Shown here in pieces: positions 9,211-62,628 of a stretch of 64,000 nucleotides of DNA. The translations under genes were made by a program, and so were the position numbers. The notes below the pieces were generated by a model, which saw only the letters and a program-made list of their open reading frames with translations, was not told the origin of the DNA and did not search any database. The stretch lies in NCBI GenBank assembly GCA_964247055.1, contig OZ176058.1, positions 372,001 to 436,000 of the forward strand, in the 5' to 3' direction. Positions within the stretch are counted from its first letter, which is position 1, and each line of letters starts with the position of its first letter. The stretch comes from Paragordius varius. Taxonomy: Eukaryota; Animalia; Nematomorpha.

Positions 9211-9216
9211 TATATA

Positions 9217-14625: not shown

Positions 14626-14700
14626 TATGTCTTTTAAAATGTAAAACTATATCAAATAATTGATCATTCAAGACAATAAATTATAAACCTTTTTTTAATA

Positions 14701-15888: not shown

Positions 15889-16184
15889 CAGTAAAAACTG
15901 AAATTACTATGGACAAAACGTAAAAATATAAAGACAAATATTTTTTTTAAAATACAACAACCATACTTTTTAAAACCTTTATTTTTGCTATATAAAATAT
16001 TTAATTATAATCGTAATTTACATATTTGATTGTGCTACCAATTTAAATTTCTATATATTATATACTTTGTAGTTTAAAATAATGAGTGATATGTAAAAAA
16101 ATCAAGATTAAAAAAAATATGGTCGTCTTTTAGATAAAAATATTTGTCTTTATATTTACCCGTAAAATCGTACAATTTTTACTG
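15889..16184. mobile_element. MITE family 1
   Basis: cagtaaaaactgaaattac...ggacaaaacg ... tttttactg-TA. Confidence 0.8.
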
Positions 16185-18044: not shown

Positions 18045-18166
18045 ATGTCTTTAAATATGGAAAAAGAAAATCTAAAAACTCAAAATCTCGATTCAAGATC
18101 AGCTGATAAAGATGGCGACCTTAAAAAAGTTCGGAAAAAACCTCGAATAAATCGGAAAGAACGAAA
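18045..18166 (+). CDS. DGAT1: DGAT1-B exon 1 ([10 protein letters not shown]...RINRKERK)
   Basis: The ATG and frame are conserved in the inverted copy (8759-8880). The phase-2 donor GTTTTT joins exon 2 in frame. An in-frame upstream ATG at 18018 is not conserved in copy A. Confidence 0.8.
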
Positions 18167-20132
18167 GTTTTTCTTGGAAATTTAAATTTTTTACAAAAAA
18201 TATTTTTTTTTAAATTTTATAAATTTTTTAAAATTATCATTTTTGATAAAAATTATTTTTTTATATTTTGAAAAAATTTTATTTTTGATAAAATTTTATT
18301 TTTTATAATTTTGTTTAATTTTTTCAAAAATAAATTTAATTTTTTGAAAATTAAATTTAATTTTTGAATTTGGTTTTTTATTTTTTTTAAAAATTTTATT
18401 TTTTATTAAATTAATATCCATATTTAATTTTTGAAATTAATTGAATTTTATATTTATTTAACACATAAATATTGTTTAATTTTAATTATTTTAGTTTTTT
18501 GGTTGTATAATTTTTTAATTTTTTTTATAGCTGTTTTATTTAGATTTTTATATTTAATTTTTTATTTTTTTAAAATAATTTAAAACCGCCTTTTCTGATT
18601 CTGTCAATTTTGGATGTAATATAAATAAAAAATTAATATTCTTATATTAAAATATTTTTATTTCAATACAAATTATCAATATTTAAAAAATAAATAAAAT
18701 TTAATAAATTATTTTTTGTTATTTGAAAATTTAATAAATTATTTTTATTTCAATACAAATTATCAATATTTAAAAAATAAATAAAATTTAATAAAATATA
18801 AATATTATTTTTGAATTTAAAATTAATTAATTTTTCTAAAATAATAAATTTAAATTTTTAATTTTTTATATTTTATTTTTTTAATTTTTTATAAAATTAA
18901 ATTATAAATTATTTATTTTTTAGAGTTCATTCAGCCAAAGACTCCTTGTTTACAAGTTCAAGCGGTTTTGCAAATTATAGAGGGCTGTTTAATCTCGCCA
19001 TGATTTTATTGGTAAAATTATTTATTTAATTAATATTTTTTTAATAAATTTATATTTTCATTAATTATTTAATTAATAGAAATATATTTTTAAATTAAAA
19101 ATAAATATTTACTGTATAAATGATTTTTAATCAATTTAATTATTTAAATTATAATAAATATTTTTCATTAAATTTATATTATATTTTTTAAAAAATAATA
19201 ATGTTTTTTTATAAAATATTACTTTTTATAAATTATTTAAAATATATAATAATTTTACAATATTTTAAGTAAAAAAATTTTTATTGTAAAACTAACATAT
19301 TTTTGAAAATAAATATTTTTTTTTTGAAATATATATTTTTTTATAGAATTTTAATATTTATAAATTATTTAAAAGAATAATTATTTTTTTTTTCAATTTA
19401 ATTTATTTAAAATATTTATTACATATTTTTAATATAATGAAAAAACGTGTATAATATTTTATACAATATTAAATTATTTATTTTTAATAAAAAAATTTTT
19501 TTAATAAATTTAAAATTTATTCAATTAAAAAAATATTTTTATTTATAGATATACATTTATATATATTTTTTATAAAAAATTTTTTTTTATCTGTTTAAAA
19601 AATTATTGAAATTAAAAAAAAAATTTAAATTATTTAAGTTTTAACTTTTTAATTAAAATGTATTTATTTCTTTAATTTATAATAAATATTTTTTTATTTA
19701 TTTAAAAATTATTTAAATTCTTGAGAATGTCATTAAATATAGAAATATTTTTAAAAATATTTTTTTTTAAAATAAATCCAAAAAATTAAATTTTTAGATC
19801 TTTTACAAACCTAAATCATTTTATTAAATAAATATTTAATTATTTCAAAAAATTTTCAATTAAAAAAAATATGTATTTGGATATTTTTAATTAAAAATAT
19901 TTCTATTTTATAAAATATTTATAGAAAAAATTTTTATATTTTTTTTTAAAATGTTTATTTTTTTTATTAATTTTTATATTTTTTAAAATTATTTATATTA
20001 TTTCATAAAAAATTAATTTTTTTAAAAAATTTAATTTATAAATATTATTAATTATCATATGTTAATCAGGTGGTATCCTCGCCTTGCTCTTGATGTGATA
20101 AAAATATAGAATTTTTTTTTAATATTTTTTAA

Positions 20133-20176
<44 letters not shown>

Positions 20177-23100
20177 TTAAATTATTTCAAAATTATATTT
20201 TGTAATTGGTAAATTTAAAAACATATTTTAAATTTTTTTTTAATTTTTAATTTTTTTTGTTTTTAAATAAAGAATATTTTTTTTATTAAATTTATATATA
20301 TTATAATTTTTTAAAAATTTTTCAAATTATATAAATTTTAATTAAAAAAATATTATAAATAAAATTTTTATTTTATTAAAAATTTCAAATTAATAAAAAT
20401 ATATTATTTATTTTTTTTTAAATTTGTTTTATATTATATAATAAAAATTAAAAAAATTTAAATTATTATTTCAAAAATAATAAAATATTTTTAAAAATTT
20501 ATAATTTTTTAAATTATCATATGTTAATCAGGTGGTTTCCCATTTAAGACTGGCTTTTGACAATGTGATTTAAAATTGAAATATTTTTCAAATTTTTCTT
20601 ATTAATTTGAAAATTTTATTTTTAAAAAATAAATTAAAATTATTTTAATTAATATATATATATAATTTAATTTTTAAAAATTATGTAAAATATTTCAAAA
20701 TTATTTAAATTAAAAAATCCAAAATATTATTATAAAAAAAACTATTTTTTTATTTTTAATTAACTATATTTTTTTATTTTCATAATTATATAAATTTAAA
20801 TTATTCAAATTAAAAAAATATAAACTATAAATAACTATTTTTTTAAATATTTTAAAAAATTTTAAATTTTTTTTATCTAAAAATTATTTTTTTAAATTAT
20901 CATATGTTATTCAGGTGGTTTCCCATTCAAGACTGGCTCTTGAGAATGTCATTAATATATATATATTTTAAAAATTAAAGTTAAAATATAAAAGATTTTA
21001 TATTATATATCTATATATAAATTATTTTATTTTTTTTAAAAATTATCCAAATTAAAAATTATATTTTCGGATAATAATTAAATAAATTTTTTTTCCAATT
21101 ATATATTCCTTTTTGTATAATAAAATTAATAATTATTTCAAAATTTTCAAATTTTGAAATTAATAAAATAATTCAAATTTAAATTAAAAAATAAATTAGT
21201 AAATTTAATATATAAATTTTTTTTTTGATTTTTATTTTTTAATAAAATAAAAAATATCTATTTTTTTTATTTAATCAGGTGGTTAGCCATTCAAGACTGG
21301 CTCTTGAGAATGTGATATTATTTATATAATTTTTAAAAAATTTTATTATAATTTGTAAAAATTATTTAAATTTAAAAATCCAAAAAAATATGTTAAATAA
21401 ATTTTTTTATTTAATTTATAAAAAAATTTAGTTTATAGTTAAATAAAATATTTTTTTATTTTTAATTAAAAATATTTTTATTTAAATTAAAAAAAATATT
21501 TTTTTAAAATTATCATATGTTTAACAGGTGGTTTCCCATTCGAAGTTAGCCCTTGAGAATGTGATTAAAAAATAAAAAAAATTGATATTTTTCAAAAATT
21601 AAAAAATATTATTTTGAAAAATTTTAATATATAATTATTTCAAAATTATTCAAATCAAAATTTTTTAAATTTTATTTTATAAAAAATATTTTTTAAAAAT
21701 TACCTCAAAATTATTTTAATTAAAAAATTCAAAAAATATGTTAAATAAAAATTTTTATTTAATTTTTTATATAAAATTATATAGATATAAAAAATTATTT
21801 ATATCAAAATAAATTAAAAAAAATATTTTTTTAAAATTATCATATGTTTAACAGGTGGTTTCCCATTCTCGGTTAGCTCTTGAGAATGTGATAAAGTATG
21901 GCATTCTGGTGGATCCAATAGCTTGGGTTACTTTTTTCCTCCGGGACCCTTATCATTGGCCCTGTACTTGTCTGTTCCTATGTATGAATGCTAATCATAT
22001 GTTTTCAAGCATATGATTTGAGAAAAAAACATATTACATTTATGTTTTGAATGTGATTTAAAAGTTTTAAAAGTTATTGAAAATATATGATTAGGGACGT
22101 TTTTCTAAAAATATATATGTTTTGTATAACATGTGATTTGAGAACGTTTTTTTAGAACATAGATATATTTTAGAAATACATATGATTTTACTTGAAAACA
22201 TATGTTTTTTTTATATAATACATATTATTTTTGCTTGAAAACATATGATATGAAAAAAATAATAAAATTATTGAAAAACATATGATTTGGGAATTTTTAA
22301 AACAATGATAAATATATTTTCTGTTTTAAAAGTTAAATTATATATTTTTTTCCTCCGGAATCCATATCATTGGCCCTGCACTTGTCTGTTCCTATGTATG
22401 AATGCGTTAATCATATGATTTTTGCTTGAAAACATGTGTTTTAAAGATTTTGTAAGATTGTGTTTTTTTAAAAAAGTTAAAAAATATGTGTTTTGAGGAC
22501 GTTTTCTAATTTATTTTGTGAAAGAGTGTTTTTAAAATATAGATCTTTTCTGTTTGAAAATTTGCGCTAATCATATGATTTTTGTTGAAAACAAATGTTT
22601 CGAAAAACATACGTTTTAAAAAACTATAAAAAGAATATTTGTGTGTTTTACCTTAAAATGTGTGGGAAAATAATTCTTTTTTAATAATTATATTTAATAA
22701 ATTAAGAACTTTTCTTAAAAAGAGTCTCAGTATAAAAATGTGTGTTTATTAAGAAAATATATTTATATGTGTTCGTTTAACTCCGGGATCCTTATCATTG
22801 GCCATGCACTTGTCTGTTTCTATGTATGAATGCTAATCATATGATTTTTTGAAATTATGTGTTTTGAAAACATATGATTTATAAAAAAACATATGTTTAG
22901 CAAAAACATGTGTGATTTAAAAGTTATAAAATATTGAAAAACATATGTAATTTTTGTTTGAAAACACATATGTTTAGAAAAATATATTTGAGGGAGTTTT
23001 TTAAAACAAATATTTTTTTTTAGAAAATATATTTTTTTAAATATTTTTATTTATTTTTTTTAATAAATTTTTTGGTAAAGAATTATATTTTTATGGGTTT

Positions 23101-23605
23101 ATATTGATGGGTAATTATGTTTACATGTATAAAAAAATAAATGTTTTTATAAATTTGGTGAAATTTTTTTATAAAAATACTGAAAAAAAAGTTTTTCAAA
23201 GAGAGTTATAAAAGTTTTACAAAGTTTTAAAAACTCATGATTATGAAATTTATGTAGAAATATTTGTTTGTTAAAAAATTGTAAACAATAAATGATTTTT
23301 GTGATAAAAACATAGTTTAAACCATTTACAATTTAAATTCACATCCTATTAACATAAATTATGTGGTTTTTAAAAAGTTACACCTATAGATTTTTAGATA
23401 TGCTATTAAAAAATAAAAAATTTTTGTTTTAAATTAAAAAAAAACTGAAAAGATAAAAAACTATCCGTCATAAAGATATATTTCATATTAATAATGAGTT
23501 ATATTAGTTTTTGATATAATAATTTATTTTTAAGGTAAAAGTGAAATGTCCAAAGGTAAATTTGAATTGTAAATGATATAAATATATATTTAATTTTTTA
23601 TTTCA

Positions 23606-23641
<36 letters not shown>

Positions 23642-23660
23642 TTTTTTATTTCAAAATATA

Positions 23661-23691
<31 letters not shown>

Positions 23692-26600
23692 TTAGTTTCA
23701 AATACATTTCCTCTCATCTGTTTTGCACTGGAAAAACTAATGTCCAAAGTATAATATAATTTTTTATTAAAAAAATATCAGCTGTTTACAACATTTTTTT
23801 TATTATTTTATAAATTAACATATTATATGTTTTCGCTTTTTAATTAACCAAAATTACATCTACAATATTATATATATATATATTATATATTTATTAATAT
23901 CTGTAATTATTAAATATTTTTAATTTTTACAATATATAATTTTTCATAATTTGCAATCATATCAGTTTTAGTAAAATTGTAATAAATCAGCTGTTTTATC
24001 AAATATTATCAGCTGTGTTTTTATTATTTTTTTTATATTTATAGAATTTTAATTTTTATTTACTATAATTATTATTAAATATTTATAAAATTATTTTTTG
24101 CATATTGATAAAGTATCAGCTGATTATTAATTATTTTTATTTTATTTTAGAATAAAATGCCCGAAAAATTTGGATTAATCCTACAATCCTTGAATATAAT
24201 AACTGTCCTAATTTTTCCAGCTGTTATCGTTTGGATAGTTAGGCCGAATCCAAGTAAACAGCTGATATTTATGAATATTTTATTATTTTTTATTAGTATT
24301 TATAGAGAAATACATTTAAAAAAATTAATAAAAGGAATTTTTAAAAAGGATTTTTCTAGAAATTTCATAAAAATATAAACAAAAGCCGTTTTTTGACATA
24401 AAATTTAAAAAATAATAAAAAAATTTTAACTTTTTTTTTAATTTTATTGTTTGAGTAATTATTATTTTAAAAAAATAAATTTTCAAATTTTATTCTAAAT
24501 AAAAAATTATTTTTTTGTTTTATTAAAATTTTTAATATATTTTTTTTTGAAATAATTTTATTTTTAAATTTAAAAAAAATTATTTTTTTTATTTTTGTTT
24601 ATTTTTTAACTAATTATTTTTTTTAAAAAAATAAATTTTTAAAAAGAAGTAAAAAATCTTTTTTTTTAATTTTATTTTTTTGAAATAAATTCGTAAATTT
24701 AAATCTAATTAAAATTTTTTTTGAAATTTCCATTTTTTTAAAAAAATATTACTTTTTTAAAGAATTATTTTATTATTTAAAAAATTATTTTATATTAAAT
24801 TGTAAATAAAATTTTTAAAATATTTTAATTTTTTAAGAAAAATCATTTTGTTAATTTAGTTGCAGCTGTTTATACGCTAACTATTTATACGTGCATTTTC
24901 CTGAAACTCGTTTCCTACGTGGCTGTCAATCATTGGTGTCGAGATGCCATCCGGAGACACCTGCCAATCAATCAACAGCTGATGGCACATGAACACCTGA
25001 TTGAGGCTGACACATCAGCTGATGTCTCGTTGTCTAGGCAACGACGTGGAAAAGATTATTTAAAAGCCAAATCGAAATCTTTATATATTAATACAGATGA
25101 GAATATGAAAAATGAAAATAAAATGGAAAATAGCTTAGAAGACTTAAATACACCATCAGCTGATGTCTCGTTACCTAGGCAACGACGTGGAAAAGATTAT
25201 TTAAAAGCCAAATCGAAATTACATATTAATGCAAAAGAATTTAATACACCATCACCTGATGCCTCGTTACCTAGGCAACCACGTGGAAAAGAATTAAAAG
25301 CCAAACCTAAATCCTTACATTTTGTTGAACATGATTACAGTATTACTAATACAGATAATGAAAATATAAAGGAAAATAGTTTAAAAGACTTTAGTACACC
25401 ATCAGCTGATGCCTCGTTGCCACGGCAACGCAGAAAACAGCTGTCCACAAGTGAGAATAAAATAGCAAGAAAGGATGACGAGAATATAATTTTCTCAACT
25501 ACAGATGATTTCAAGAAAAATGAATTTGAAAACAATGGCAAAGGTGAAAATGATATGGAAAATCTTGATGAGACGCCATCTTTATCGCCATCAGGTGATG
25601 AATCATCAGCTGTTTCAGAGGGTAGTTCAGTAACAGCTGATTCTGATCATGCGAGTGAGGATCATATGGCGGAAAAAGCACCCAAGAAAAAAAAGTATGA
25701 TATTTTTTATTTTAAAACGCTTCTTTTATTCGAAAGAAAAATCTGTTTTTTAAGTCAACTGTGTAAATGAATGCATCACTAGCAGCTGTTTGCACAATCA
25801 TATCAGCTGTAATTTTTGAATGCATAGAACGTTTTTTTTCAAATTTAAAACAGCTGATATTTTGTTTATAATAAAGATTTTTAAAACTTTTTTATAATTT
25901 ATTTTTAGTATAATACATAATTAATGTGAATTTTTGTTTATATATATATATGTATACATTGTTTATATTTTTTAAAAAAACGATAATATATTTAAATAAT
26001 TTATATTTTCTATATTTAAAATATATATATATATCTTTTGAAAAAATATACTTAAAATTATAATATTTAAATAATTCATATTATATATTTATAAAGTATT
26101 AAATAATACATATATTATATATTAAAATTTTATAAAAAATATGTTTTAATTTTTATTAAATATTTAAATAAATTTAATTTAAATTATTAATATATTTGAC
26201 TAATTTATATAATATAATAATGTATAATAAAAATTTATATATTTTTATTTTAATAAATATATTTTTTTTAAAATAATTATAATATTAATTTTTAAATATT
26301 TAAATATTTAAATAAATTTAAATTTATTATTTTTAATAAATTATTTTTTAGTTATAGCATATTTATTTATAAAATAAATTAAAAATAAAATTTAAAAATA
26401 AAAAAAAAATTTTTTTTTTAGAAATTTTAAAAGTGCTTCAGTATTTGTTAAACGAGAATCTTGCACACCTCAGAGCTTATATGCCTATAGAGATGAAAAA
26501 GGTTAGATTTTTAATTAAATTAATTTTAATTTAAAAATTAATATATTTAGAAATTATTTAAATTAATTTTTTATTAAAAATTAATTTTTTTAATTTTTAT

Positions 26601-29600
26601 TTAAAAAATTAATTTTTAATTAAAAAAAAATTTTTAATTGAAATAATTATTTTTATTTATTTTTATTTAAAAAAAATAAATTTTTTTAAAAAAAATTAAA
26701 TTTTTAAATTAATTTTAAATTTTTTTTTGAAAATTCAAATTTATAAATTATTTTAAAAATTTGAATTTATATTAAAAATAATATATTAAAAATAAAAAAA
26801 TTATTATTTTAAAAATTATTTATTAAATTAAAAAAATTTTTTTTATAATTTTTTAAAACATATACTTTATAAAAAATATTTAATGATTAAAATTTAAAAA
26901 AAAATTTAAAAATATTTTTTTTATTTTTTATATTTATATTTTAAAAATATTTTTTTTAATTATTTAATTTAAATTTTTTTTAAAAAAAAATTAATTTTTA
27001 AATTAAATAATTTTTTAAATAAAATTAATTATTTTATTTTTTGAAAATATATTTTTATTAAAAATTATTATCAAATTTTATTAAATTAATATTTAATAAA
27101 AATATTAACTATATGAATATTTTAAAAACAGTTTAGTTATAAAAATATTTATATAAAAATATTTGGTTAATATTTAATTATATTTGAATCTAAAATTTTT
27201 TTTATATTTCTTAAATAAGTTTTTGTATAAATTTTTTTTAAAACATATATTTTAAAAACAAATATTTTTTTTAAAAAAATTAATATTTAAATAAAAATAT
27301 ATTATTTAAATATTTTATTTTTTTAAATAATTAAAAAATAAATATTTATTTTTTAGATTTAAAAATTTTGTTTGGAAGAAAACCTGTTGAATATCCTGAT
27401 AACTTAACTCTTAAAGGTAATTAATTTTATAATAAAAAAATAATTAAAAAATTAAATTTAAAAAAATTCAAATTATATTATATAAATATATTTATAAAAA
27501 TAATTTAAAATTTTTTATATTTATTCATAATTACTAGATTATTTTAATATAAATTATTTATATATATTTTTTTTTATAAAAATTATTTATATTAAATTTA
27601 AAAAAATAATATATTTAAAAGTAAATATTTTTTTATTAAAAATTTTAAAATAAAATATTTTATTTAAATATTTTAAAATATTAAATATTTTTAGTTTACT
27701 TATAATATTAATAAAATTTAATATTTTTATTTTCCATATTTTTTAGATTAAATATTTTTTTATATTTATATTTTAAAATATTTTTTAGATTAAATATTTT
27801 TTTATATTTATATTTTAAAATATTTTTTTAATTTTTAAAAAATATTATAAAATTAAATATATTTATTTATATTTTTTGAAATTATGTATAATATTAAATA
27901 GAAAATAATTTTTTTAAAAATATATTTTTTTATAAATAATTTTAAAATATAATATTTTCTATTTTTAATTTTAATTAAGTTATTTAAAATTAAATATTTT
28001 TATTATATTTATTAATAATAGAAATATTAATAAAATTATTTAAAATTAAATATTTTATATTTTATTTATTAATTAATTTATTTTTATTTTTTTAAATAAA
28101 ATTTTAAAATAAATTTTTTATTTTTAGATTTTAAAAATGTTATAGTTTTAATAAAAAAATATTTTTCTATTTAAATGTTTTAATTTTAATAAAATATATT
28201 TAATTTTTAAATATTTTTATTTTTTTATATTTTTTAGATTTATATTATTTCTTATTTATAATAAAAAATATTAATAAAATTTTTAATTAAACAAAATTAA
28301 TAAAATTATTTAAAATATAAAATAATTATAATATTTTTAAATATTTTATTTTTTAATATTAATAAAATTATAAAATATTTAAATATAATTATTTTTTAAT
28401 ATTTTTTATTTTTAGATTTATATTATTTCCTATTGGTGCCAACGTTCTGTTATGAATTAAATTTTCCAAAAACTCAAAGAATTAGAAAATTATTTTTATT
28501 CAAACGAATTATGGAAATGGTAAAATATTTTAATTTAAAAATATTTTTATTAAATTATTTAATTTTTATAAATTATTTTTTTTTTATTAAATATTTTTAT
28601 AAATATATAATTTTTTATTAATTTTGCTATAAATATATTTTAATTTTCAAATTTTTTTAAAACCTAAATTATTTATTTTTATATGAATATATTTAATTTT
28701 TTAAAAATAGATATATTTTATTTAAAATATATATTTTAAAATAAAATATATAATTTTTAATTTAAATATTTTATATTTTTTAATATATATTAATTTTAAT
28801 TATTTCAATAAATTAATTTTATAAAATATATCAATTAATTTGGTAACTACTGTGAAAATTGGAAAATTATTTTTATTCAAACAAATCATGGAAATGGTAT
28901 TTAAATTTATATTTTATTAATTTTAAAAATATTTAATTTTAATAATATTTAATTTTAAAAATATTTAATTTTAAAATAAAATATTTATTTAAGAATATTT
29001 GTGTTTTAATTAATTATTATATAAATATAAAAATATTTAATTTTTAATTAAATATATAAATATTTTAATAGTTCTTTAAGATATTTTTAAAATTTTTTGA
29101 ATTATTAATTTAAAATAATTTTTGTTAATATATTTTATGAATATATATTTTAAAAAAATATTTTATATAATTAAAATTTTTTTTTTAAATTATTTTAAAT
29201 TTTAAAAATTTATTTTTTTATAAGAAAATTAATTTTTTTTATTAAAATAGATATTTTTATTACAATAAATGCTTGGCCTAATAATTTTTTAAATTTTTTT
29301 AAAAAAATAAAATAATTACCAATTTTTATTAAAATAATAATCAACTTATTTAATTTAATATTTATTTCATAAAATATATTAAAAAATTATTTAAAAAATT
29401 AATTTATATAAAAAATATTTTTAATATTTTTAAAATAAAATAAATTATTTAAATTTAAAATATTTTTTTAAAATATAAAAAATATTAATTTTTTAAAAAA
29501 AGATATTTAATAAAAAATTAATTTTATAAAAAAATATAAATTTTAAAATAAAAAAAATTATTTTTAGATATTTTTATTACAATTAATGCTTGGCCTAATA

Positions 29601-30462
29601 CAACAATGGTTAATTTATATATATATTAAAATATACTAAAAAAAATTAATTATTTATATATTTTATATATATTGAAAAAATAATCAATATATTTTATTTT
29701 ATTATTTAAATTATTTTAATAAAAAAATAAATAAATAATTTAAAATTAATTTTTTTATTAATATAGATATTTTTAAATATATATTTCATAAATAAATATT
29801 AAAAATTTAAAAAAAATTATTTTTTTATAAATTATTTTATAAAAAATTTCAATATATTAAATTTTTTTTAAAAAAATAAAAATTAATTTTTTATTAAAAT
29901 AGATATTTTTATTACAATTAATGTTGGCCTAATACAACAATAGATAATATATATATATATATATATATATTATAAATGGAAAAATTATTTTATATAAAAA
30001 ATTTAATTAATTCATTTAAAATTTTAAAATATTTAATAAAAAATTAAATTAATTTAATTTTTTTAAAAAAATTTCTTTTCTTAATAAAAATTAATTAGAA
30101 TATTTAATTTTTTCAAAAATAAAAATTTTTTTTTATTAAATTTAGATATTTTTATTACAATTAATGCTTGGTCTAATACATATATATATATATATATATA
30201 TGAATTGAAAAATTAATTATTTAATATATTTTTAAAAAAATAAAATAAATTTTAATTAAAAATTTTTAATGAAAAAATTAATATTTTTGAAATTTTTTTA
30301 TTTTTTAAAAAATAAATTTTTTAATAAAAATTATTAATTTTTTTATTAATAAAAATAGATATTTTTATTACAATTATGTATATATTTAATATACGAAAAA
30401 ATTAATTAATTTATAAATATTTAAAATTTTTTTATAAAAAATATTTAAAATTTTTTAAAAAA

Positions 30463-30510
<48 letters not shown>

Positions 30511-31038
30511 AAAAAATAATTTAATTTTTTTAAAAAATTATTTATTGAATAAAAAAATTATTATATTTATTGAATAAAAAAATTATTATATTTAATTAAA
30601 AATTAAATTTTTAAAATTAAAAAAAAATTTATTTTTTTAATTAAAAATTAAATAAATTTACTTAATTTAATAAAATTTTAATAATTAAAATAATAAAAAA
30701 TTATTTTTTATAAAAATTAATTAATTTTAATTTTTTTATTAAAATAGATTTTTTTATTACAATTAATGCTTGGCCTTATACAACAATGGATAATTCCCAC
30801 CATTAATAATGCTTTGGCGCCATTCAGCTCCATGGATTATGCTAGAATGTTTGAAAGACTTTTGAAATTAGCAGTATTTTATTTTTTAGTAAAATTAAAA
30901 AATATTAAAAAAATATAGCAAAAATTATATATTTTTGATTAAAATTATTAGAAAAATCCTTTTTTTGAAAAAATTAGCTAAAAAAATGTTTTTTTCGAAA
31001 AAAAAAAAACTAAAAAATGAATTATTAAAACAATATGA

Positions 31039-31074
<36 letters not shown>

Positions 31075-32673: not shown

Positions 32674-32709
<36 letters not shown>

Positions 32710-35700: not shown

Positions 35701-38700
35701 ATAAAATTGTTCTTTTTACGTTTTGTCCTAATGTATAGAATTTTAATTTTTACTATATATATATATATATATATATATACATACTTTTTATAATGTTATA
35801 TCATTAAAAAATGTAATTAAATTGTTTATATTAAAAAATTAAGGTTTAAAAACGTAATCCTTTTAGAACAATAAAATTGTTCTTTTTACGTTTTGTCCTC
35901 AGGTATAGAATTTTAATTTTTACTATATATATATATATATAAATAAATATACTTTTTAAATGCAATCTATTCCAAATTATAAAGTTATGGAGATGATTAA
36001 TTAATTAATTTATAAACTATTTTCTATAACAACAATATGAACAAAAAATTTATTATTCTTAATTAGTTAATGATTATTGATGCCAAAATATATCAATATA
36101 CATCAAATAATAATTTTAGAGTCAATATCAAAATAAAACATGATAAAAAAATTACTGTAAGCCAATATATGTATATTTTCTTTCTGGTATGAATTTATTT
36201 ATAGGAAAATAAAAAACTTGATATTCTTAAACAGATAATTAAAAAATTTAATTTAGATAGTCAAAATTAAACTATTTTTCCCAATAATAAACTAGATAGA
36301 TTAGTATTCAATGTTAATTTTACAGTAAAAATTAAAATTATACGGACAAAATGTAAGAATATAGAGATAACATTTTTTTTTCTAAAAGATATCATCATAC
36401 TTTTTGAAACTTGATTTACTCAAATATAAATAATCGTTTAGATTTGTTAATTATGGAAATGCAAGCATAAATATATTAAATAAATAAAGATTTTGCCTTT
36501 ATATTTTAACGTATTGTCCTCACGTATAATTTCAATCTTTATTGTATATAAAAACGATTAGGGTTGTGAAATAGGATAGTTTTCTATTGATTAAAAATTT
36601 TGTCTTAATATTTTAAGTTTCTCCGTATAATTTAAAATTTTAGTGTAAAAACAAATTGAAATGATAATCAAAATGTTTTTATGGGAAACATTTTATAATT
36701 CTTAAAAAATTATTTGGTTCTTTTAAATATTTACGTCATGTCCTCACGTATAATTTCAATTTTTACTGTAACTTACATGTCGATTCCTTTTTTTGCAAAA
36801 TATAACGATGAGTTTTTTTCTTCAAAAAAATCAATAGGGTTTAAGAAAGTAGATGGCTGATTTTTAATAAATATAATTCATACAAATATTTATATATATA
36901 AATATTAATTTCATCTGTGTTTGGTAGTTTTTAATAATGTAAAATTTAATGGGTTTCTCAATTTAATTTATTTATATATATATGCATTTTTTGCAACACA
37001 AAAAAAACGATGATAGTATTTAATTTTTTTTAATATATAGTCATTTGTCTCTTATAATTGCTACGTTTTATCTATTGATTATCAAATTTACTTATATATA
37101 TATTTCTATTTTTCTATTTATAACAATAATTTTAACTGTTTCTTAAGTTTTTTTACTATATAATTTATATTTTTACGTTTTGTCCTTTCGCGTATAATTT
37201 CAGTTTTTACTGTAATTTTATATTTGTTTCAAGTATTTTTTTACTATATAATTTATATTTTTATTGTAATTAATAAAAATAAATTTTGATAAAATTATTT
37301 TATTATATAATATATATTTTTACTGTAATAAAAATAAAAATTTTTCTATAATATTTTACTATATAATTTATATTTTTACTGTAATTAATAAAAATAAAAA
37401 CTTTTTTTTTTAATTTTATATAAATTTTCAGACATTTATATTTTTAAAAAATTTCGAAAAAATTATTTTACTATATAATTTTAATTTTTGCTGTAATTGA
37501 GAAAAAAAAATTTCGAAAAAAATATAATTTTATTATAATCATTTTTTGCAGACATTTATAACATATTTAATTTTATTGTAAAAAATAAATTTATTTAAAT
37601 TTATTTTAAATTTATTTAAATTTATTAAATTTTACTGTAAAAATTATTAAAAATTAATTTATTAAAATTTATTTAATTTTTTAAAACATATATAAATTTA
37701 TTTAATTTTACTGTAAATTTAATTATATTTTTTTAAAAAAAATAATTTTATTTAAAAAATATTAAAACATATATAAATTTATTTAATTCTTTTACTGTAA
37801 AAAATTATTATAAATTATTTATCAATTTTACTATGCTTTTTAAAATTATTATGAATTTAATTTTATTTAAAAAAAATAATTTTTTTAAAATAAATTTTCA
37901 GACATTTATATTTCCCACTTTTGGATTTGGGAGTTTCAAAGCTGGTCGCTTCAATCATAGTTTTTCTGGTCAGTGCTTTTTTCCATGAGGTTAATATTTT
38001 TTATTTTTAAAAAATATTTTTCGTAAAAATTATTTAATTTTTATTTTATCTTTAAATAAAAAAAACTTTTTTTAAAATATTATTTTATCTAAAAATTATT
38101 ATTTTATGATAAATATTTTTTGAAATATTAACTATTCTTTTTTTTATGATTTAAGATTAATTTTTTTATATTTAAATATATAAAAATACAATTCGAATTC
38201 ACTCTTCGATTCAAAATGACCCTTTAAAAATTAAATATGTGTTTTCAAACTCATCGTATAATTTGAAATCATGGATCATTTTTCAGTATTTTTTTAATTT
38301 TTGTCACAATTTTATTTTTTTTTAATTTTATAAATAAAGGTAATTTTTAATCTTAAAAAAAACATAATTTATTTAAGGTGTGAATTTGAATTGTTCAAGG
38401 GTAAATTTGAATTGATGATCTAATGTTCAGTACAATTTTTCGAAAAAAAACAAAAACAAAAAAAACTGTTATATAATAATTGATTCATGCGTTGTTTAAA
38501 AAAAGTTTTAGTCAAAAAATTAAATGTAAATTATATCTCTAAAAATTATTTTTTTTATTTAAATTAATATTTTGAAAGAAAATAAATTTTCCATTGAAAG
38601 TTGCGGTTAAAATACTTTTTATAAAATTCTATAATTAAAATTACTTTTTTTATATATATTTATATATATAAAAAAAATATACCATTTACAATTCAAATTT

Positions 38701-41700
38701 ACCCTCGAACAATTCGAATTCAACTTAATTTCAAATTTACCCTTCAATTCAAATTAACCCCCTAAAATAAATTATGTGTTTTTTAAGATATTTAGTATAA
38801 TTATTTTTTTGATATATATTTGAAAAATGAAATTTTGTCTAAAATAAATATAATACTGGAAAAATAATAATTTACATAAAAATATTTTTTTATTAATAAT
38901 GAGTTATTAGCTGCTCGAAAAAACACATAATTTATTTTTAGGGTGAATTTAATTGTTTTAAGGTGAATTTGAATTGTAAATGATATATATATAATATTTT
39001 AAATTCACCCCCTAAAATAAATTAGGTGTTTTTTTTAAATTAAAAATTACCTATATATTTTAATAGGTATTATTAAAAATATTTTGTTTTAAATTTAAAA
39101 AATACTGAAAAAATAATACACTTTGCCATAAAAATATATTTAATTATAATGATGAGTTATATTAAACCGAAATTTTATAATTTAGAGTGAATTTGAATTG
39201 TTCAAGGGTAAATTTGAATTGTTTAAAGGTGAATTTGAATTGTAAATTGGTATATATATAATATTTCAAATTCACCTCTTAAAATTAATTATATGTTTTA
39301 TAATATTAAAAAATACCTATTTATTTATATTTATAAATTTTCTAAAAAAAATTTGTCTAAAATTAATATAATACTGGAAAAATTATAAACTATGCGCCAT
39401 AAAGATATATTACATTTTAATGATGAGTTATATTAAAATAATTTATTTAGAGGGTGAATTTGAATTGTTAAGGGTGAATTTTTATTGTTCAAAGAGAGTG
39501 AATTTAAATTTATGAAAAATCTTTTGAGTTTCGATAAATTTTTTGCCCTAAGAAATACAATATCTCAAATATAAAATATTTATTGGTAATTATTAAATTT
39601 ATTTAAAAATAAAAATTAAAAAAATAAAATATGTAGAAAATTATTTATTTTATTTAATAGTATTTATTGAGTGTTCCACTTCATATGTTTCGACTCTGGG
39701 CTTTTTTTGGAATGCTTATGCAAGTTAGTTTTGTATTTTGTATTTTTTTAGAAATTTTTATATTTTTTAATGAAAAATGTAATTTTTAGTATTCAGTATA
39801 TATTTAATATATAGATATAAAATCTAAATATTGTAAATTATACTATGGAAGGCAAAACGTATAAATATAAAGACAAATTTTTTAAAAAACAATTCCTTAG
39901 TTTTTTAAACTTAAATTAATTCTTGTAAAATAATAATTAACAAGCCTAAAATATATAATTAATTATGTTACCAATATACATTTCAAATCTATAATTTGCA
40001 GTTAAATAATGAGTTATAATTTAAAAGGAATTTAAAAAGTATTGGGTTGTCTTTTGAAAAAAAGCATTTTTGTCTTTATATTTTTAATATGTCCATAGTA
40101 AAATTTCAATTTTTATTGTATATTTTTTGTAACTTATCAATGCTAACCTAAATCAATAATATTAAATAATTTATATTTTAAAATCATCAATTTAACATTA
40201 AACATTGTTTTTTGTTAATTTTGGCCCTTTTTATATATTGTTATCAATTATAGATCTGACTGGTTCTAAAGATATACAGTCAGTAATAATGCAAAATTAT
40301 CAAAAATTTAAACTCATATTTTTTTTATAAAGAAAACCAAATATTTTAACCCTTATATTTTTTGTGTGATTTATATTGCATTTATAATTGATTGTGTTTC
40401 CAATTTACATCAACTCTTAACCTTATATTTCAATTCAATTAAAAACGATACGTTTAATATTCTCAAGGGTTTAAAAAACTATGGTTTTTTTGCAAAAAAA
40501 ATTGTGTTTTAGTTTTGTTTTACATTCTTCTCTTTATTTTATTCTAATAAATTTTTTGAAACTTATAAAAAAATTACTCAATAAATTTTTTAAAAAAAAT
40601 AACTTAATTATTCAAATTTCCAAAAAAATTTAGTCTATTATTGAAATTAACTCTTTTTTGAAAAATTGAAAATTCCATTAATATTTATATAATTTAATAA
40701 TTTTAACTGTAATTTTTATTTTTACATTCGTTTCTTTTTTATTTTAATTTTTGGAAGTTTCAAAAAAAATTACTCTATTTTTGAATTTTTTAAAAAACAA
40801 ATTACTTAATTTTTGAAATTTACTCTTTTTCAAAATTAACCCGATTAATATATATATTATTAAATAATTTCAAATGTAATTATCAAAATAATTATATATT
40901 TTTATAATATTAATATTTATATAATATTAAATTTTAACTGTAATTTTTAAAAAAAAAATTTTTTTTTAAAAAAAGTTGTTTTATATTTTTACATTCAATA
41001 ATTTTTTAAAACTTCCAAAAAAATTCACTCTATTTTTGAAAAATTGACCCTTTTTATAAATTAATAATTATGTAATTAAATAATTTTAAATGTAATTTTT
41101 ATTTTTACATTTGTCTCTTTATATTATTTTAATCCATTTTTAAAACTTTCAAAAATTATTCACTCTGTATTTGAAATTTAAAAAAAATACTTAATTTTTA
41201 ATATAAACTCTTTTTCAAAATTATAAACGATTAATATTTATATAATTAAATAATTTTAACTGTAATTATCAAAAAAATTTTTTTTTAAAAAAAATAGGTC
41301 CTTTTGGCCTACGTTAAAAAAATTTTAAGTTCCAAAAAAAATTACTCTATTTTTGAAATTAACTCTTCGAAAAATTGAAAATTATATTAATATTTATTAT
41401 TAATAAAATATTTAAACTGTTATTTTTATGTTTACATTTGTCTCTTTATTTCATTTTAATAAATGCTTCAAAGTTCCAAAAAAAATCACTTTATTTTTTA
41501 AAAATTAATATTATTTATGTAATTAAATAATTTAACTGTAATTATCGAAAAAAAATTTTTTTTTAAAAAAATAGGTCACTTTAGCATACATCGTTATATT
41601 TCAATTCAATTAAAAACGATAGTTTAATAAATATTTTCAAGGATTCAAAAACTATTTTTTTATTTGCAAGTTTTAGTGTGTTTTTTTTGTCTCTTTATAT

Positions 41701-42680
41701 TATTTTAATAAATTTTTGAAACTTTCAAAAAAAATTACTCCATTTTTGAAAAATTTAAAATTCCATTAATATTTATATAATTAAATAATTTAACTGTAAT
41801 TATCAAAAAAATTATTTACATAAAATAGGTCCCTTTGGCATACGTTAAAAAAAATTTTAAGTTCCAAAAAAATACTCTATTTTTGAAATTAACTCTTTTT
41901 CGAAAAATTGAAAGTTTCATTAATATTAATATAATTAAATAATTTTAAAGGTATTTTTATTTTTACATTCTTCTCTTTATTTTAATAAATTTTTGAAACT
42001 TTCAAAAAAAATTACTCAATTTTTGAAATTAACTCTTTTTCCGAAAATTGAAAATTCCATTAATATTTATAGAATTAAATAATTTTAAGTGTAATTATCA
42101 AAAAATAATTTTTTTTTAAATTTCCATCATAGGTCCCTTTGGCATACGTTTAAAAAAAATTTTTTAAATAAAAAATTCTTTCTATTTTTGAAATTAACTC
42201 TTTTTCAAAATTATAAACTCCATTAATATTTATTATTAATAACATATTTTAACTGTAATTATTAAAAAAAATTTTTTTTTATAAAAAATAGGTCCCTTTG
42301 GCATACGTTAAAAATTTTAAGTTCCAAAAAAAACTTTTTCAATTTTTGAAATTAACTTTTTATCGGAAAACTGAATATCATTATTATATAATAAAATAAT
42401 TTCAACTTTAATTATCAAAAAAAAATTTTTTTCGCAAAAAAATTGTATCTATTTTTTCAATAATTTTTTGAAACTTTTAAAAAATTACTTAATTTTCAAA
42501 ATTAAATAATTTTAAATGTAATTATTAAAAAAATAGGTTCCTTTAGCATACGTTGTTTCAACTTATCTCAAAGGTGGTCAATGGGGTAATATCCTGGTAT
42601 GGTTAAGTCTTATCCTAGGTCAACCAATTTGTATTCTCATGTATTTCCATGATTATTACATTCTCAACATGGTTAAATAA
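18045..42680 (+). CDS. DGAT1: DGAT1 copy B, complete spliced gene (15 coding exons, 723 aa)
   Basis: Manual splicing of exons 18045-18166, 18924-19011, 21855-21981, 23696-23748, 24151-24253, 24860-25694, 26422-26501, 27357-27416, 28416-28519, 30748-30873, 32777-32889, 34028-34093, 37902-37989, 39661-39723 and 42537-42680. All junctions are GT-AG with compatible phases; total 2172 nt. DGAT1 motifs present: [87 protein letters not shown] (catalytic His) and [14 protein letters not shown]. Confidence 0.96.
18924..19011 (+). CDS. DGAT1: DGAT1-B exon 2 ([29 protein letters not shown])
   Basis: TTTTAG acceptor, GTAAAA donor, DGAT1 motif DSLF-S-SGF-NYRG. Confidence 0.95.
20050..21570 (+). repeat. 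Array of acceptor + 5'-half-exon-3 copies in DGAT1-B intron 2
   Basis: CAG|GTGGT... copies with AG ending at 20069, 20531, 20914, 21278 and about 21527. Confidence 0.92.
21855..21981 (+). CDS. DGAT1: DGAT1-B exon 3 ([42 protein letters not shown])
   Basis: The only full-length unit among the repeats; AACAG acceptor, GTATGA donor. Confidence 0.95.
21982..22990 (+). repeat. 3'-half-exon-3 + donor copies in DGAT1-B intron 3
   Basis: ctccgg.atcc.tatcattggcc.tgcacttgtctgtt.ctat|gtatgaatgc at about 22350 and 22782. Confidence 0.92.
23696..23748 (+). CDS. DGAT1: DGAT1-B exon 4 ([17 protein letters not shown])
   Basis: TTTAG acceptor, GTATAA donor; identical to copy A 1479-1531. Confidence 0.93.
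24151..24253 (+). CDS. DGAT1: DGAT1-B exon 5 ([34 protein letters not shown])
   Basis: TTTTAG acceptor, GTAAAC donor; this is the coding part of ORF 24157..24378. Confidence 0.94.
24860..25694 (+). CDS. DGAT1: DGAT1-B exon 6 ([15 protein letters not shown] plus long repeat-containing loop)
   Basis: TTTAG acceptor; 835 nt open in frame with ORF 24919..25770; GTATGA donor at 25695, phase-compatible with exon 7. Confidence 0.9.
26422..26501 (+). CDS. DGAT1: DGAT1-B exon 7 ([26 protein letters not shown])
   Basis: GC-richer island with a polyT-AG acceptor and GTTAGA donor; phases fit exons 6 and 8. It has no recognisable DGAT1 motif of its own. Confidence 0.8.
27357..27416 (+). CDS. DGAT1: DGAT1-B exon 8 ([20 protein letters not shown])
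   Basis: YPDNLT motif; TTTTAG acceptor, GTAATT donor. Confidence 0.93.
28416..28519 (+). CDS. DGAT1: DGAT1-B exon 9 ([35 protein letters not shown])
   Basis: Hallmark DGAT1 motif; AG/GT boundaries. Confidence 0.96.
29200..30400 (+). repeat. Five acceptor + 5'-half-exon-10 copies in intron 9
   Basis: AG|atatttttattacaattaatgcttggcctaata copies starting at 29251, 29568, 29903, 30146 and 30359. Confidence 0.92.
30468..30506. repeat. (TA)n microsatellite (one of many: also about 738, 3945, 20140, 23610, 23656, 29948, 30180, 31042, 32678, 35745)
   Basis: Direct reading. Confidence 0.9.
30748..30873 (+). CDS. DGAT1: DGAT1-B exon 10 ([42 protein letters not shown])
   Basis: The only full-length unit among the flanking partial copies; AATAG acceptor, GTATTT donor. 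Confidence 0.95.
30874..32000 (+). repeat. Four 3'-half-exon-10 + donor copies in intron 10
   Basis: ...aa.ttagc.|gtat copies with GT at 31213, 31490, 31786 and 31949. Confidence 0.92.
32777..32889 (+). CDS. DGAT1: DGAT1-B exon 11 ([37 protein letters not shown])
   Basis: FYxDWW motif; TTTTAG acceptor, GTAATA donor. Confidence 0.96.
34028..34093 (+). CDS. DGAT1: DGAT1-B exon 12 ([23 protein letters not shown])
   Basis: WNxPVHxW motif; TATAG acceptor, GTGAGC donor. Confidence 0.96.
34506..34754. mobile_element. MITE family 1 in intron 12
   Basis: TA-cagtaaaaattgaaa...ggacaaaacg ... cgttttgtccgg...actg-TA. Confidence 0.85.
34880..35170. mobile_element. Foldback MITE family 2 in intron 12
   Basis: TACCATTTACA...GTAAATGGTA. 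Confidence 0.88.
36323..37215. mobile_element. MITE family 1 with a repeatedly duplicated right TIR (intron 12)
   Basis: Left end at 36323; several right-end copies at about 36545, 36645, 36770 and 37210. Confidence 0.7.
37902..37989 (+). CDS. DGAT1: DGAT1-B exon 13 ([29 protein letters not shown])
   Basis: Contains the MBOAT catalytic His (SAFFHE); TTTCAG acceptor, GTTAAT donor. Confidence 0.96.
38200..39510. mobile_element. Tandem cluster of partial family 2 elements in intron 13
   Basis: Repeated aaattcacc / gggtgaatttgaattg ends with the family core; 3-4 units. Confidence 0.75.
39661..39723 (+). CDS. DGAT1: DGAT1-B exon 14 ([21 protein letters not shown])
   Basis: AATAG acceptor, GTTAGT donor; DGAT1 motif SVPLxMFRLWAF. 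Confidence 0.96.
40380..42530 (+). repeat. Tandem array carrying acceptor + first codons of exon 15
   Basis: atag|gtccctttggcatacgtt-type copies starting at 41298, 41575, 41829, 42133 and 42292; shared spacer ...aattactctatttttgaaattaactc...ttaactgtaattatcaaaa. Confidence 0.9.
42537..42680 (+). CDS. DGAT1: DGAT1-B terminal exon 15 ([47 protein letters not shown])
   Basis: AATAG acceptor; TAA stop at 42678-42680; GN..VWLSLI.GQP..LMY.HDYY motif. Confidence 0.95.
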
Positions 42681-45600
42681 TTGAAAAATCAGCTGATCTG
42701 CACACACAAAAATATTAAAACAATGTTGATAACAGCTAAGAAATTAATCTAATATGGATATATATATATATATATGTGTGTGTAAATTTTCGACCAATCA
42801 ATTTTATAAGACCTTTAAGGATTCATTTTCGAGTTATTGCTCTTAAAAACAATGTAAAAAAATAAAATTAGCTTATCTGGAAAGAATTCCACAATAATTT
42901 CGCATATTATGTATTTCCATGATTATTACATTCTCAACATGTATAAGAGCAACTAAAAATTGTTTAAAACAGTAAAAATCAGCTGATCTGCATATACAAA
43001 AATATTAAATTCCCTTAAACAATGAATATTGTTAAAAACAGCTAAGAAATTAATCTAATATGGATATATATATATATAAAGATGTGTGTAAATTTTCGAC
43101 CATCTAATTTATAACACTTTTCAATTGAAAAAAGGAACAAAAGAAAATAAGCTGATCTGGATTGAATTTTAAAATATCGCATATTCTCATGTATTTCCAT
43201 GATTACTACATTCTCAACTTGTACAAAAACAACAAATAACCGTATTTAAAAATCAGCTGATCTTAATACCAAGATATTAAATTCCCTTAAACAATGAATA
43301 TTGTTAAAAACAGCTAAGAAATTAATCTAATATGGATATATATATGTGTAAATTTACGACCAATCAATTTTATAAGACCCTTGAAATTTTATATTGATAA
43401 CAATTAAAAACAGTGTTGAAAGAAAATCAGCTGATCTGCCAACAAAAATATTAGATTTACCCACTAACAATGGTAAAAACAGCTATATAGATATATTTTA
43501 TAGCACCCTTAAAAAAATTTTCTCGAGTTATTGCTTTAATAACAATCGAAAAAAACAAAATCAGCCGATCATGATGGTATTCCACAATAAATTAGCATAT
43601 TTTCAAGTTTTTCCATGATTATTACATTCTCAACATGTACAACAATGTTAAAAATGATTGAAAAATCAGCTGATATGCAAAAAACTTATTGAATTTACAC
43701 ACTAACTAATGTTAAAAATAGCTAAGAAATTAATCAAATATGGATAAATATATATATGTGTAAATTTTCGACCATATAATTTTATAATACCTTTCAATTG
43801 GAAAAAAGGAAAAACGAAAATAGCTGATCTGGTTAGAATTCTTAAACCAATTTGTATTCTCATGTATTTCCATGATTATTACATTCTCAACATGTATAAA
43901 AATTGATTGAAAAATCAGCTGATCTGCATACACAAAATTTAAATTTTCTCAAACAATGAATGTTAAAAACAGCAAAGAAATTTTGTAAATTTACGACCAC
44001 TTAATTTTATAACACATTTAAAATTTTATTTTGGACTTATTACACGTAAAAACAATTGAAAAAAAGGAAAATCAGCTGATCCAGATAAAATTTTAAAATG
44101 TAATACAATTTCATGTATTTCCATGATTATTACATTCTTAACATGTATAAAAATTGAAAAATCAGCTGATCTGCATACAAAAATATTGAATTCACCCAAA
44201 CAATGAATGTTAAAAAGGTTCAAGAAATTTATCTAATGTGCGCATATAAGTGGAAATTTTATCTAATGTGAATTTCATTTAGACCCTTTAAAAATTTACA
44301 TTACAATTAACAAAATGAAAATCAGCTGATCTGGAAAAATATTCGACAATAAATTCGCATATTCTTATGTATTCCCATAATTATTACATTCTCAACATGT
44401 AAAAAAAACGCTAAATATGATTGAAAAAATCAGCTGATCTGCATATACAAAAATATTGAATTTACCCAAACAATGTTTAAAACAGCCTATTTAATGAGGA
44501 CATAGTTAATATATCCCTTAAAATTTATTTTGAAACCATTGCACTAAAAGGAAAATAGCTGATCTGGAAAGAATTGCAAAATATCGCATATTCTCATGTA
44601 TTTCCATGATTATTACATACTCAACATGTATAAAAACAACTAAAAACAATGGAAAATAGAAAATCAGCTGATCTGCATACAAAAAATTTAAATTCCCTCA
44701 AACAATGAGTGTTAACAGCTAAGAAATATATCTAATGTGGATTTATATCTAAATTTACGACCATATAATTTTATAACACCTTTCAATCAAAAAAAGGAAT
44801 AAAAGAAAATCAGCTGATCTGGATGAAATTCCAAAACCAATTTGTATCCTTATGTATTTCCATGATTATTAAATTCTCAACGTGTACAACAATGTTAATT
44901 AATTGAAAAATCAGCTGATCCGCATACACAAATATTGAATTAACCCAAACGATGAATGCTAAAACAGCTAAAAATTTATCTAACGTGAATTTCATTCAGA
45001 CCCTTTAAAAATTTACATTATCAACATTTATAAAAATTGAAAAATCAGCTGATCTGCATACATAAAATATTAAATTCGATCACACAATGAATGTTAAAAC
45101 AGCTAACAAATATATCTAATGTGGGCATATGTAAATTAACGACCATATAATTTTATATAAAACATTTTAGCGTTATTACATTTAACATAATAAAAATCAG
45201 CTAATCTGGATAGAATTCTAAAATACACTTAAACGTTTTCATGTATTTCATGATTATTACATTCTTAACATGTATAAAAACGACTAAAACAATGGTAAAA
45301 AGAAAATCAGCTGATCTGCATACAAAATTATTGAATTTCACACAAAGATTTTAAACAACTAACAAATTTATCTAATGTGGGCATATTTTATAGCACCCTT
45401 AAAAATTTTTTCTCGAGTTATTGCTCTTATAAACAATGTAAAAAAGAAAATCAGCTGATCTGGACAAAATACCAAAATATATTTGCACATTTTCATGTAT
45501 TTCCATGATTATTACATTCTCAACATGTACAACAAAGTTAATAATGATTGAAAAATCAGCTGATCTGCATTCAAAATTTTAGAATTCACCCAAACTAGGA

Positions 45601-46300
45601 TTTCAAACTAACAAATTTATCTAGACTTACATATTTTCATGAATATTACATTCTTAACTTGATAATCGCCACATAGACAGCATTCACAACAACGAAAACA
45701 GTTGAAACAAATCAGGTGTTATGGAAAATTTCTAAAAGAAAATTTATAGCGCATAAAAGAAAAACAGCTGATTTGGATAGAAAAATTAACTATTTTTCAA
45801 TATCAAACTAATTTTACGCGAGCGATTTTTATTAAATAGAAGAAATAATCAGTTATCTGAATCAAAATTTAGAAGGATACGTCCCTACACCATCAGATTA
45901 CATAATTTTTCATACGACCTTTTAGAATTCAAATCATTAAACAATGAAACATAGTTCAAAAAATAATCAGCTGATATAGATAAAATTGTAAAAATGTTAA
46001 AATACGTTAAATTCAAGATTGAAATACACAGACTATATTTAAAGTCATTACTAAAGAATGCAAAAAGAAATTATCTTGAAAAATTTTTCAAAAATACGTA
46101 ACTTTTGCCCTAATTATTACATATTCTTTACATATGTACAAAAAAACTAATCATTGATAATTACCTCAAAGAAAAACAGCTGATCTGGATGATTTTATTT
46201 AAAATATTGGTTAATTGAACCAAAAAGGATTGCAATATATTTATAATGGTTAAAAATTTTTATATTTTCGAATTATTATTATCACGCAAAAAAAGAGAAT
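42681..46300 (+). repeat. Tandem array of exon-15 3' end plus downstream sequence (units of about 250-400 bp)
   Basis: tattctcatgtatttccatgattattacattctcaacatg...aaatcagctgatctgc recurs about 11 times and decays distally. Confidence 0.93.
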
Positions 46301-46744
46301 ATAATCAGCTGATCTTGAGGAATATTGATAAATAAATCATTTTACCCATATTATTTTAATAATATATTTTTAATCTTGATATATTTTAAATTAAATTTCA
46401 AATATATATATATTTAATGGCACTACGAATTGACAATAATAATTTATATGTGCATCGCAAACGTAATAATAAATAAATTAATATATATTTTAAAAAATTT
46501 TATCCCTTATTTGTCATTTAAAGTTCAAATTGTGTTTTTGAAGCATTGTTTGGTTAACATGTAAAAGATTATTAAGTAACAATTAAAAATTATATTATGG
46601 ACAAAACTTAAAAATTGAAAAGAAATATTTCTAAAGGCAATCAAACTTTAAATTCTCGTAAAGATATTATTAATTTAAAACGGTAAAATATATAATTGAT
46701 TGTATTAGAATATAATATATTTTTTTGTAGAAATGATATTGTTA

Positions 46745-62620: not shown

Positions 62621-62628
62621 AAAAATAG

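Follow-up and report, generated by a model that had tools for sequence, protein, structure and literature searches.

Truncated exon edges in the introns of a predicted DGAT1 gene of Paragordius varius, probably founded by local tandem duplication across splice junctions

The introns of a predicted DGAT1 gene in the nematomorph Paragordius varius carry series of copies of the neighbouring exons' own edges, each cut off within the exon and each retaining the adjoining splice site. The window analysed is the 64,000-nt stretch at positions 372,001 to 436,000 of contig OZ176058.1 (assembly GCA_964247055.1, forward strand), and coordinates refer to positions within it. These series are probably repeats of the "mirage" type, a reading that takes together an origin in local tandem duplication, a polarity set by geometry, the generality of the duplication process, selection against some of its products, silence of the copied splice sites, and exchange of sequence with the working exons. 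DGAT1 is a fat-synthesis gene of the MBOAT family. As judged from the match of exon 11 to the human DGAT1 structure (PDB 6vp0, residues 328-364; E=5.8e-16), and from the continuous reading frame, the host gene is DGAT1. The copy on the forward strand, gene B (18018-42680), was modelled from reading frames and splice signals as 15 exons, with GT-AG boundaries at 14/14 introns; when spliced, it forms one open frame of 732 amino acids, running from 18018 to the TAA at 42680. The G+C content of the window is 5-25% per 2 kb, falling as low as 3% in introns, and the exons are marked by islands of higher G+C. Paralog A (1-8948, reverse strand) and the corresponding part of gene B (17849-24333, forward strand) form a head-to-head inverted duplication around a ~9-kb spacer (9100-17800) full of dispersed and tandem repeats, and their introns are ~75-87% identical where alignable.

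The copy map was made by searching each exon, with 20-nt flanks, against the window, keeping matches of at least 14 exon nt at E<=1e-3, and then aligning them. Real exons gave 61 qualifying matches; the mean for 20 shuffled sets of exon bodies was 1.5, the highest count in any set being 5, and reversed bodies yielded 1. Within gene B there are 19 acceptor-side copies, upstream of their exons (five of E3, one of E9, five of E10, one of E11, two of E13 and five of E15), seven donor-side copies, downstream of theirs (two of E3, one of E9 and four of E10), and ~12 tail copies beyond the stop codon. Paralog A holds nine acceptor-side copies, all of E3, and four donor-side copies (three of E3, one of E1). 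Each of the 28 acceptor-side copies consists of an AG followed by 10-56 exon nt, and each of the 11 intronic donor-side copies of 10-53 exon nt followed by a GT, these dinucleotides being retained in 28/28 and 11/11 cases respectively (Table 1). Every half-exon copy listed in the original prediction, which was made from the sequence alone, was recovered by this sensitive search and alignment, and its claim that 5' halves lie upstream and 3' halves downstream holds throughout: acceptor-side copies are all upstream, donor-side copies all downstream, and all are on the gene strand, with no robust exception. The downstream array of exon 15 is also present, but it is not intronic as had been stated, since it sits past the stop codon in the 3' flank. 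Each array adjoins its source exon, which forms the last unit of the upstream arrays and the first unit of the downstream arrays.

Were polarity a matter of chance, a coin toss would give 11/11 polarised arrays with a probability of 0.0005. The original prediction attributed this to such duplications being tolerated only in the observed polarity, an appeal to selection that proves unnecessary, as the polarity follows from the geometry of duplication. Duplicating a segment composed of the end of an intron (i2) and the start of an exon (e1) produces i2-e1-i2-e1-e2, in which the cut-off 5' copy lies upstream of the complete exon; duplicating the end of an exon (e2) with the start of the next intron (j1) produces e1-e2-j1-e2-j1, in which the cut-off 3' copy lies downstream. 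Hence, whenever a tandem duplication breaks once in an exon and once in the intron, the polarity arises automatically and one whole exon survives; the polarity therefore indicates the mechanism, rather than what selection permits. The founding events would have been local tandem duplications of ~180-460 nt, with one breakpoint in the exon and the other in the adjacent intron, each leaving a cut-off exon edge stranded in the intron together with its splice site. Unequal exchange would then have amplified some of these units to arrays of up to nine.

The internal structure of the larger arrays carries this argument further. Firstly, 14/14 acceptor-side units of E3, across A and B, stop at one exon position, after GAGAATGTGAT; those in B read CAG/GTGGTT (the slash marking the splice junction) and continue for ~40 nt of exon 3, and the flank AAATTATCATATGTTAATCAG is common to most of the 14. 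Secondly, 5/5 donor-side copies of E3, again across A and B, start in the same T-run of the exon and have the downstream intron in common (flank homology z=5.7). Thirdly, 5/5 acceptor-side copies of E15 have ~60 nt of flank in common. The common truncation points and homologous flanks of the E3 and E15 units imply one founding duplication per array, followed by amplification, and bear out the earlier proposal that the copies arose by tandem duplication across splice junctions. For the upstream arrays of E10 and E15, Tandem Repeats Finder detects periods of 243 and 277, and unit length across all arrays is ~130-570 nt, mostly 250-460. Two further observations concern the E3 units. The upstream flanks of the nine units in A (4121-7182, reverse strand) tend to alternate between AAATTATCATATGTTAATCAG and TTTTTTATTTAATCAG, which suggests a higher-order repeat of two units. 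A switch of serine codon, from TCC to AGC, is found in four neighbouring units of A and in one unit of B.

The arrays span 7925 of the 22464 intron nt of gene B (35%), which agrees with the prediction that such duplications have made introns grow; calculated from coordinates, they make up 63% of intron 2, ~85% of intron 9 and ~76% of intron 10. Local direct repeats in general (offset 60-2500 nt) cover 49% of intron bases, and 50% of bases in and around the gene, compared with 6-9% of the region in block-shuffled controls. Only 9-10 of 28 exon-intron boundaries lie within arrays, and, set against the ~50% of intron bases in repeats, this means exon edges are not preferred targets of duplication. 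Rather, the same local duplication process probably builds these AT-rich introns throughout, with the exon-edge cases being conspicuous because exon sequence is higher in G+C.

It is in what is missing that selection becomes visible. None of the ten founding events gave a unit containing a whole exon (P=0.0035 under uniform placement), whereas 27-60% of exon-touching duplications would be expected to do so, given unit lengths of 180-460 nt and exon lengths of 53-149 nt; nor were any exon-internal duplications seen in the gene. Hence selection is apparent in the missing whole-exon units, rather than in the polarity, and it would have purged those duplications that bore a whole exon or fell inside one.

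Exons 2-6 of A and B, aligned exon by exon, differ at 22 of 456 nt (~19 of them silent), with only three amino-acid changes, implying that both paralogs are under purifying selection and must therefore be correctly spliced; the frame of gene B is intact. The half copies would stay silent through each lacking a partner splice site, as exon definition predicts: to be spliced in, a unit would need both splice sites, and a single one would not suffice. Position would help too, since in every series the true donor comes first and the true acceptor comes last. A weight matrix built from the gene's 14 donors finds 8 donor-like sites per kb of intron, and is too weak to predict potential partners for the decoys. 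Recursive splicing was considered as a general reading, as the E3 and E15 decoys read AG/GT, the form of a recursive splice site, and was rejected on the grounds that the other 4/6 upstream arrays lack this form, reading AG/A instead.

Simple decay of stranded copies does not account for the conservation, or the third-position bias, of their exon-derived parts. In 12/12 decoys tested, resemblance to the real exon and its surroundings is closer over the exon-derived part than over the 60 nt of intron flank next to it; for the E11 copy the values are 0.98 and 0.77, relative to a shuffled baseline of 0.73. Taking the real exon of B as reference inflated the count over codon positions 1/2/3 to 22/13/47; polarised on the majority state, derived states confined to decoys number 13/9/25, and those shared with a real exon 5/0/14. 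The paralog A decoy at 6231 reads TCT CGA, as does the real exon of B, and at the paralog-distinguishing site CTTG[T/C]CTG all decoys match the real exon of their own paralog. The most economical reading of these sequence patterns, which seems at roughly even odds to be the right one, is that decoys and the working exon trade sequence, through short-tract gene conversion or unequal exchange. Such exchange would keep exon-derived parts fresher than their flanks, and would explain the silent-site bias of the decoys. A more far-reaching version would make the copies anything but inert, with the arrays storing mostly silent variants of exon edges and returning them by exchange, AG/GT units taking part in the stepwise removal of introns that are 95% A+T, and the arrays forming a working architecture rather than debris; this is unlikely.

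Distinctly unlikely is direct selection on the half-exon copies as splicing aids in the removal of long AT-rich introns, whether recursive sites or decoys, as optional in-frame micro-exons, or as a reserve for the repair of exon ends. The derived states found only in decoys are distributed 13/9/25 over codon positions 1/2/3 (p=0.012) and comprise 21 silent and 26 replacement changes, but a codon structure of this kind would arise just as readily if working exons overwrote the decoys or were the pool from which decoys were sampled. All 39 copied AG and GT dinucleotides are intact, a result that is just marginally unexpected (P=0.036). The greater conservation of exon-derived parts than of flanks would also fit selection, as would the unaltered G+C of the decoys (0.32, compared with 0.33), although their changes are A/T-biased, with 23 from G/C to A/T and 11 from A/T to G/C, a ~four-fold difference per site. 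An in-frame pseudo-exon of 33 nt (CAG/GTGGTT...GAGAAT/GTGATA) can be drawn in the E3 units, yet several decoys, namely A 4121, A 5840, B 20070 and A 3016 (TGG to TGA), have a frame-breaking deletion or a stop. Similarly, the AG/GT form of the E3 and E15 decoys could favour a role in splicing, but the donors thereby regenerated, GTGGTT and GTCCCT, are a poor match to the 14 donors of the gene, and the four upstream arrays that begin AG/A regenerate no donor. Direct selection on the decoys is less likely than conversion or exchange.

Several points weigh against the interpretation of the arrays as mirage-type repeats founded by tandem duplication. For the single copies of E9, E11 and E13, and parts of E10, flank homology is not above that of shuffles (z 0.1-2.9); alignment is powerless in introns of 3-5% G+C, hence the tandem origin of these copies is argued by analogy. 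For the E11 copy, a simple recent tandem duplication is ruled out, and the E10 truncation points vary between units. In addition, the whole-exon calculation takes present unit lengths as the founding lengths, and both correct splicing and the silence of the decoys are inferred. The single copies are also the best case for patch copying, in which template switching during repair would insert exon-edge fragments of 24-64 nt a few hundred nt away: in E11, E13 and E9 the similarity stops 7-11 nt upstream of the acceptor, and the flanks are at random level despite the exon part being 95-100% identical. This explanation is nevertheless very unlikely, as neither the polarity nor the single strand nor the start of copies at the splice site, all of them exceptionless, follows from it, and the large arrays are plainly made of whole tandem units. 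Even among the single copies, there is weak homology on the expected diagonal for E11 (offset 337-347, compared with 351; z=2.2) and E13 (z=2.9), and gene conversion of an old decoy accounts for the same data.

The founding by tandem duplication can be dated relative to the split between the paralogs. Units were compared with one another by strict BLAST scoring, as permissive +1/-1 scoring gave noise in AT-rich sequence. Several units are reciprocal best matches between the paralogs, among them the pair A 5840 and B 20915, 88% identical over 244 nt, and the pair A 4798 and B 21528, 81% identical over 254 nt; the donor-side unit A 3016 has its upstream flank in common with B 22397. Hence the exon 3 arrays, already composed of multiple units, predate the split of A and B. 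Copy number has drifted since, with nine units in A and five in B on the 5' side of E3, three and two on its 3' side, and one and none on the 3' side of E1. That the arrays are mis-assembled or falsely expanded repeats is scarcely credible, even with one amphioxus mirage reported to have been aberrantly assembled in a draft genome (PMC3087553), as units are ~10-25% apart where alignable and 213-571 nt long, whereas false expansions are near-identical, and as matching units and truncation points recur at two paralogous loci whose introns are ~20% different.

Other features of the window lie outside these arrays. Exon 6 contains a lineage-specific insertion of ~280 amino acids (24943-25694), absent from human DGAT1 and including 3-4 internal repeats; compared with 1.8 billion representative proteins, this exon had no close relative, its best matches being 25% and 38% identical. 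It is present in four sequencing runs from two samples, none of these runs being clearly RNA. The terminal block recurs ~20 kb beyond the gene as a distal duplicate, which has no other DGAT1 exon near it and whose tail units run off the window. The palindrome CAGCTG occurs 55 times (0.55 expected), often as ATCAGCTGAT, with occurrences at 23779-25856, 42690-46311 and 62784-63939, and at 77-1449 in paralog A. It clusters about exons 4-6, in exon and intron alike, where its sites are conserved in paralog A; there are 1-2 per unit of the E15 tail array, and none in the intronic half-exon arrays. A dispersed repeat family built from 21-nt subrepeats (such as GGTGAATTTGAATTGTTCAAG), probably a foldback element or one like a miniature inverted-repeat transposable element, is found in both orientations, inside introns 12 and 13 as well as in the flanks. 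A satellite of ~135-140 nt flanks the gene in arrays of up to ~13 units, with 84-92% identity and in both orientations.

Table 1. Features of the window. Copy positions give the first exon base of acceptor-side copies and the last exon base of donor-side copies; a slash marks the splice junction.
Feature	Positions	Strand	Copy positions	Remarks
Gene B exons E1-E3	18018-18166, 18924-19011, 21855-21981	+		
Gene B exons E4-E6	23696-23748, 24151-24253, 24860-25694	+		
Gene B exons E7-E9	26422-26501, 27357-27416, 28416-28519	+		
Gene B exons E10-E12	30748-30873, 32777-32889, 34028-34093	+		
Gene B exons E13-E15	37902-37989, 39661-39723, 42537-42680	+		TAA stop in E15
DGAT1 paralog A	1-8948	-		found by self-BLAST; exons 1-6, E6 running off window
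Paralog A exons E1-E3	~8759-8948, 7906-7993, 3782-3908	-		
Paralog A exons E4-E6	1479-1531, 990-1092, 1-85	-		E6 leaves window
E3 acceptor array, B	20050-21854	+	20070, 20532, 20915, 21279, 21528	five units, 249-462 nt
E3 donor array, B	21982-22843	+	~22397, 22823	two copies: exon 3 positions ~78-127, donor GTATGAATGC and downstream intron
E3 acceptor array, A	3909-7202	-	nine, 4121-7182	nine units, 213-571 nt, two alternating flank types
E3 donor array, A	2438-3781	-	2458, 3016, 3374	three copies, start point as in B
E1 donor copy, A	8589-8758	-	8606	last 15 exon nt and donor GTTTTTCTTGG; A only, no B counterpart
E9 acceptor copy	28231-28415	+	28238	TTTTTAG/ and 19 exon nt
E9 donor copy	28520-28899	+	28896	exon positions 65-104 and GT
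E10 acceptor array	29234-30747	+	29251, 29568, 29903, ~30146, ~30357	five copies, 18-48 exon nt; varying truncation points, often followed by (TA)n
E10 donor array	30874-31963	+	31212 (10 nt), 31489, 31785, ~31949	four copies (10, 53, 37, 37 exon nt), donor GTAT in each; flank z=10.4
E11 acceptor copy	32419-32776	+	32427	55/56 exon nt identical; intron flank near random level
E13 acceptor copies	37420-37901	+	37432, ~37552	24-nt exact match (-11 to +12) at 37420-37443; 10-nt remnant at ~37552; just 10-12 exon nt apiece
E15 acceptor array	41288-42536	+	41298, 41575, 41829, 42133, 42292	five units, ~160-305 nt, all cut after exon nt 18 (ATAG/GTCCCTTTGGCATACGTT)
E15 tail array	42681-46300	+	12 from 42909 to 45670	~12 units, ~250 nt: last 25-59 coding nt, stop region and 3' flank
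Distal terminal-block duplicate	61541-64000	+		E15 acceptor-side copy 61541-61567; complete E15 copy 62617-62794, 96%
21-nt-subrepeat family	9238-9331, 9752-9875, 13476-13515, 14709-15026, 35045-35184, 38940-39494, 51632-52611	both		
~135-140-nt satellite	11593-11849, 46716-47389, 54498-56344	both		

The ~26 intronic splice-site copies of gene B, being of known position and age, constitute a natural experiment on how the true site is chosen, opening exon definition, "first donor wins" and "last acceptor wins" to study. They also give a direct view of intron growth by tandem duplication in an extremely AT-rich genome, and the absence of whole-exon units is a gauge, available from sequence alone, of the duplications that splicing cannot tolerate. 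Exchange between decoys and working exons, if true, would amount to a new way for sequences within a gene to evolve in concert.

The closest known systems are the amphioxus "mirage" minisatellites of Adh3, the globins BflGb6 and BflGb9, troponin C and PGBD5, which are tandem duplications across 5' and 3' intron-exon boundaries, with the AG or GT in the copies, units 81-100% alike, copy number varying between haplotypes, and splicing reported to be undisturbed (PMC3087553, PMC3902484). The DGAT1 arrays are similarly tandem, with units that span the boundary and arrays that adjoin the source exon. However, in the published cases a gene has mirages at one or two junctions, the units being 10-160 bp long, whereas 11 exon ends are affected in DGAT1, with units of 180-460 nt; this departure in unit size is a difference of scale, not of kind. 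Also unlike the published mirages, the DGAT1 arrays take up 35% of the intron sequence, date from before a paralog split, and belong to a very AT-rich genome.

A donor-side parallel exists in intron 7 of human F7, where the first repeat of a 37-bp variable number tandem repeat spans the exon-intron boundary, identical silent donors follow the true donor, and the donor furthest upstream is the one that prevails in experiments (PMC1557585). Likewise, in the E3, E9 and E10 arrays of DGAT1 the true donor comes first, although the F7 repeat, with its 37-bp units, is confined to the donor side of a single junction and has no acceptor-side counterpart. Both the mirages and the F7 array are spliced past (PMC3087553, PMC3902484, PMC1557585). 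Tandem duplication also copies splice signals within genes in the Rogers model, in which introns are gained or remodelled through duplication of AG/GT segments (PMC3265369, PMC4974935, PMC2812944), and tandem repeats at exon-intron boundaries have been described in human segmental duplications (PMC2812944). In the cases fitting that model, the duplicated signals are used, creating a new intron or exon, whereas in DGAT1 existing introns have been lengthened, with no new intron position evident. The original prediction was aware of no description of the phenomenon at whole-gene scale; its kind is in fact already known from single junctions, in the amphioxus mirages and the F7 repeat, but its density across a whole gene is unusual.

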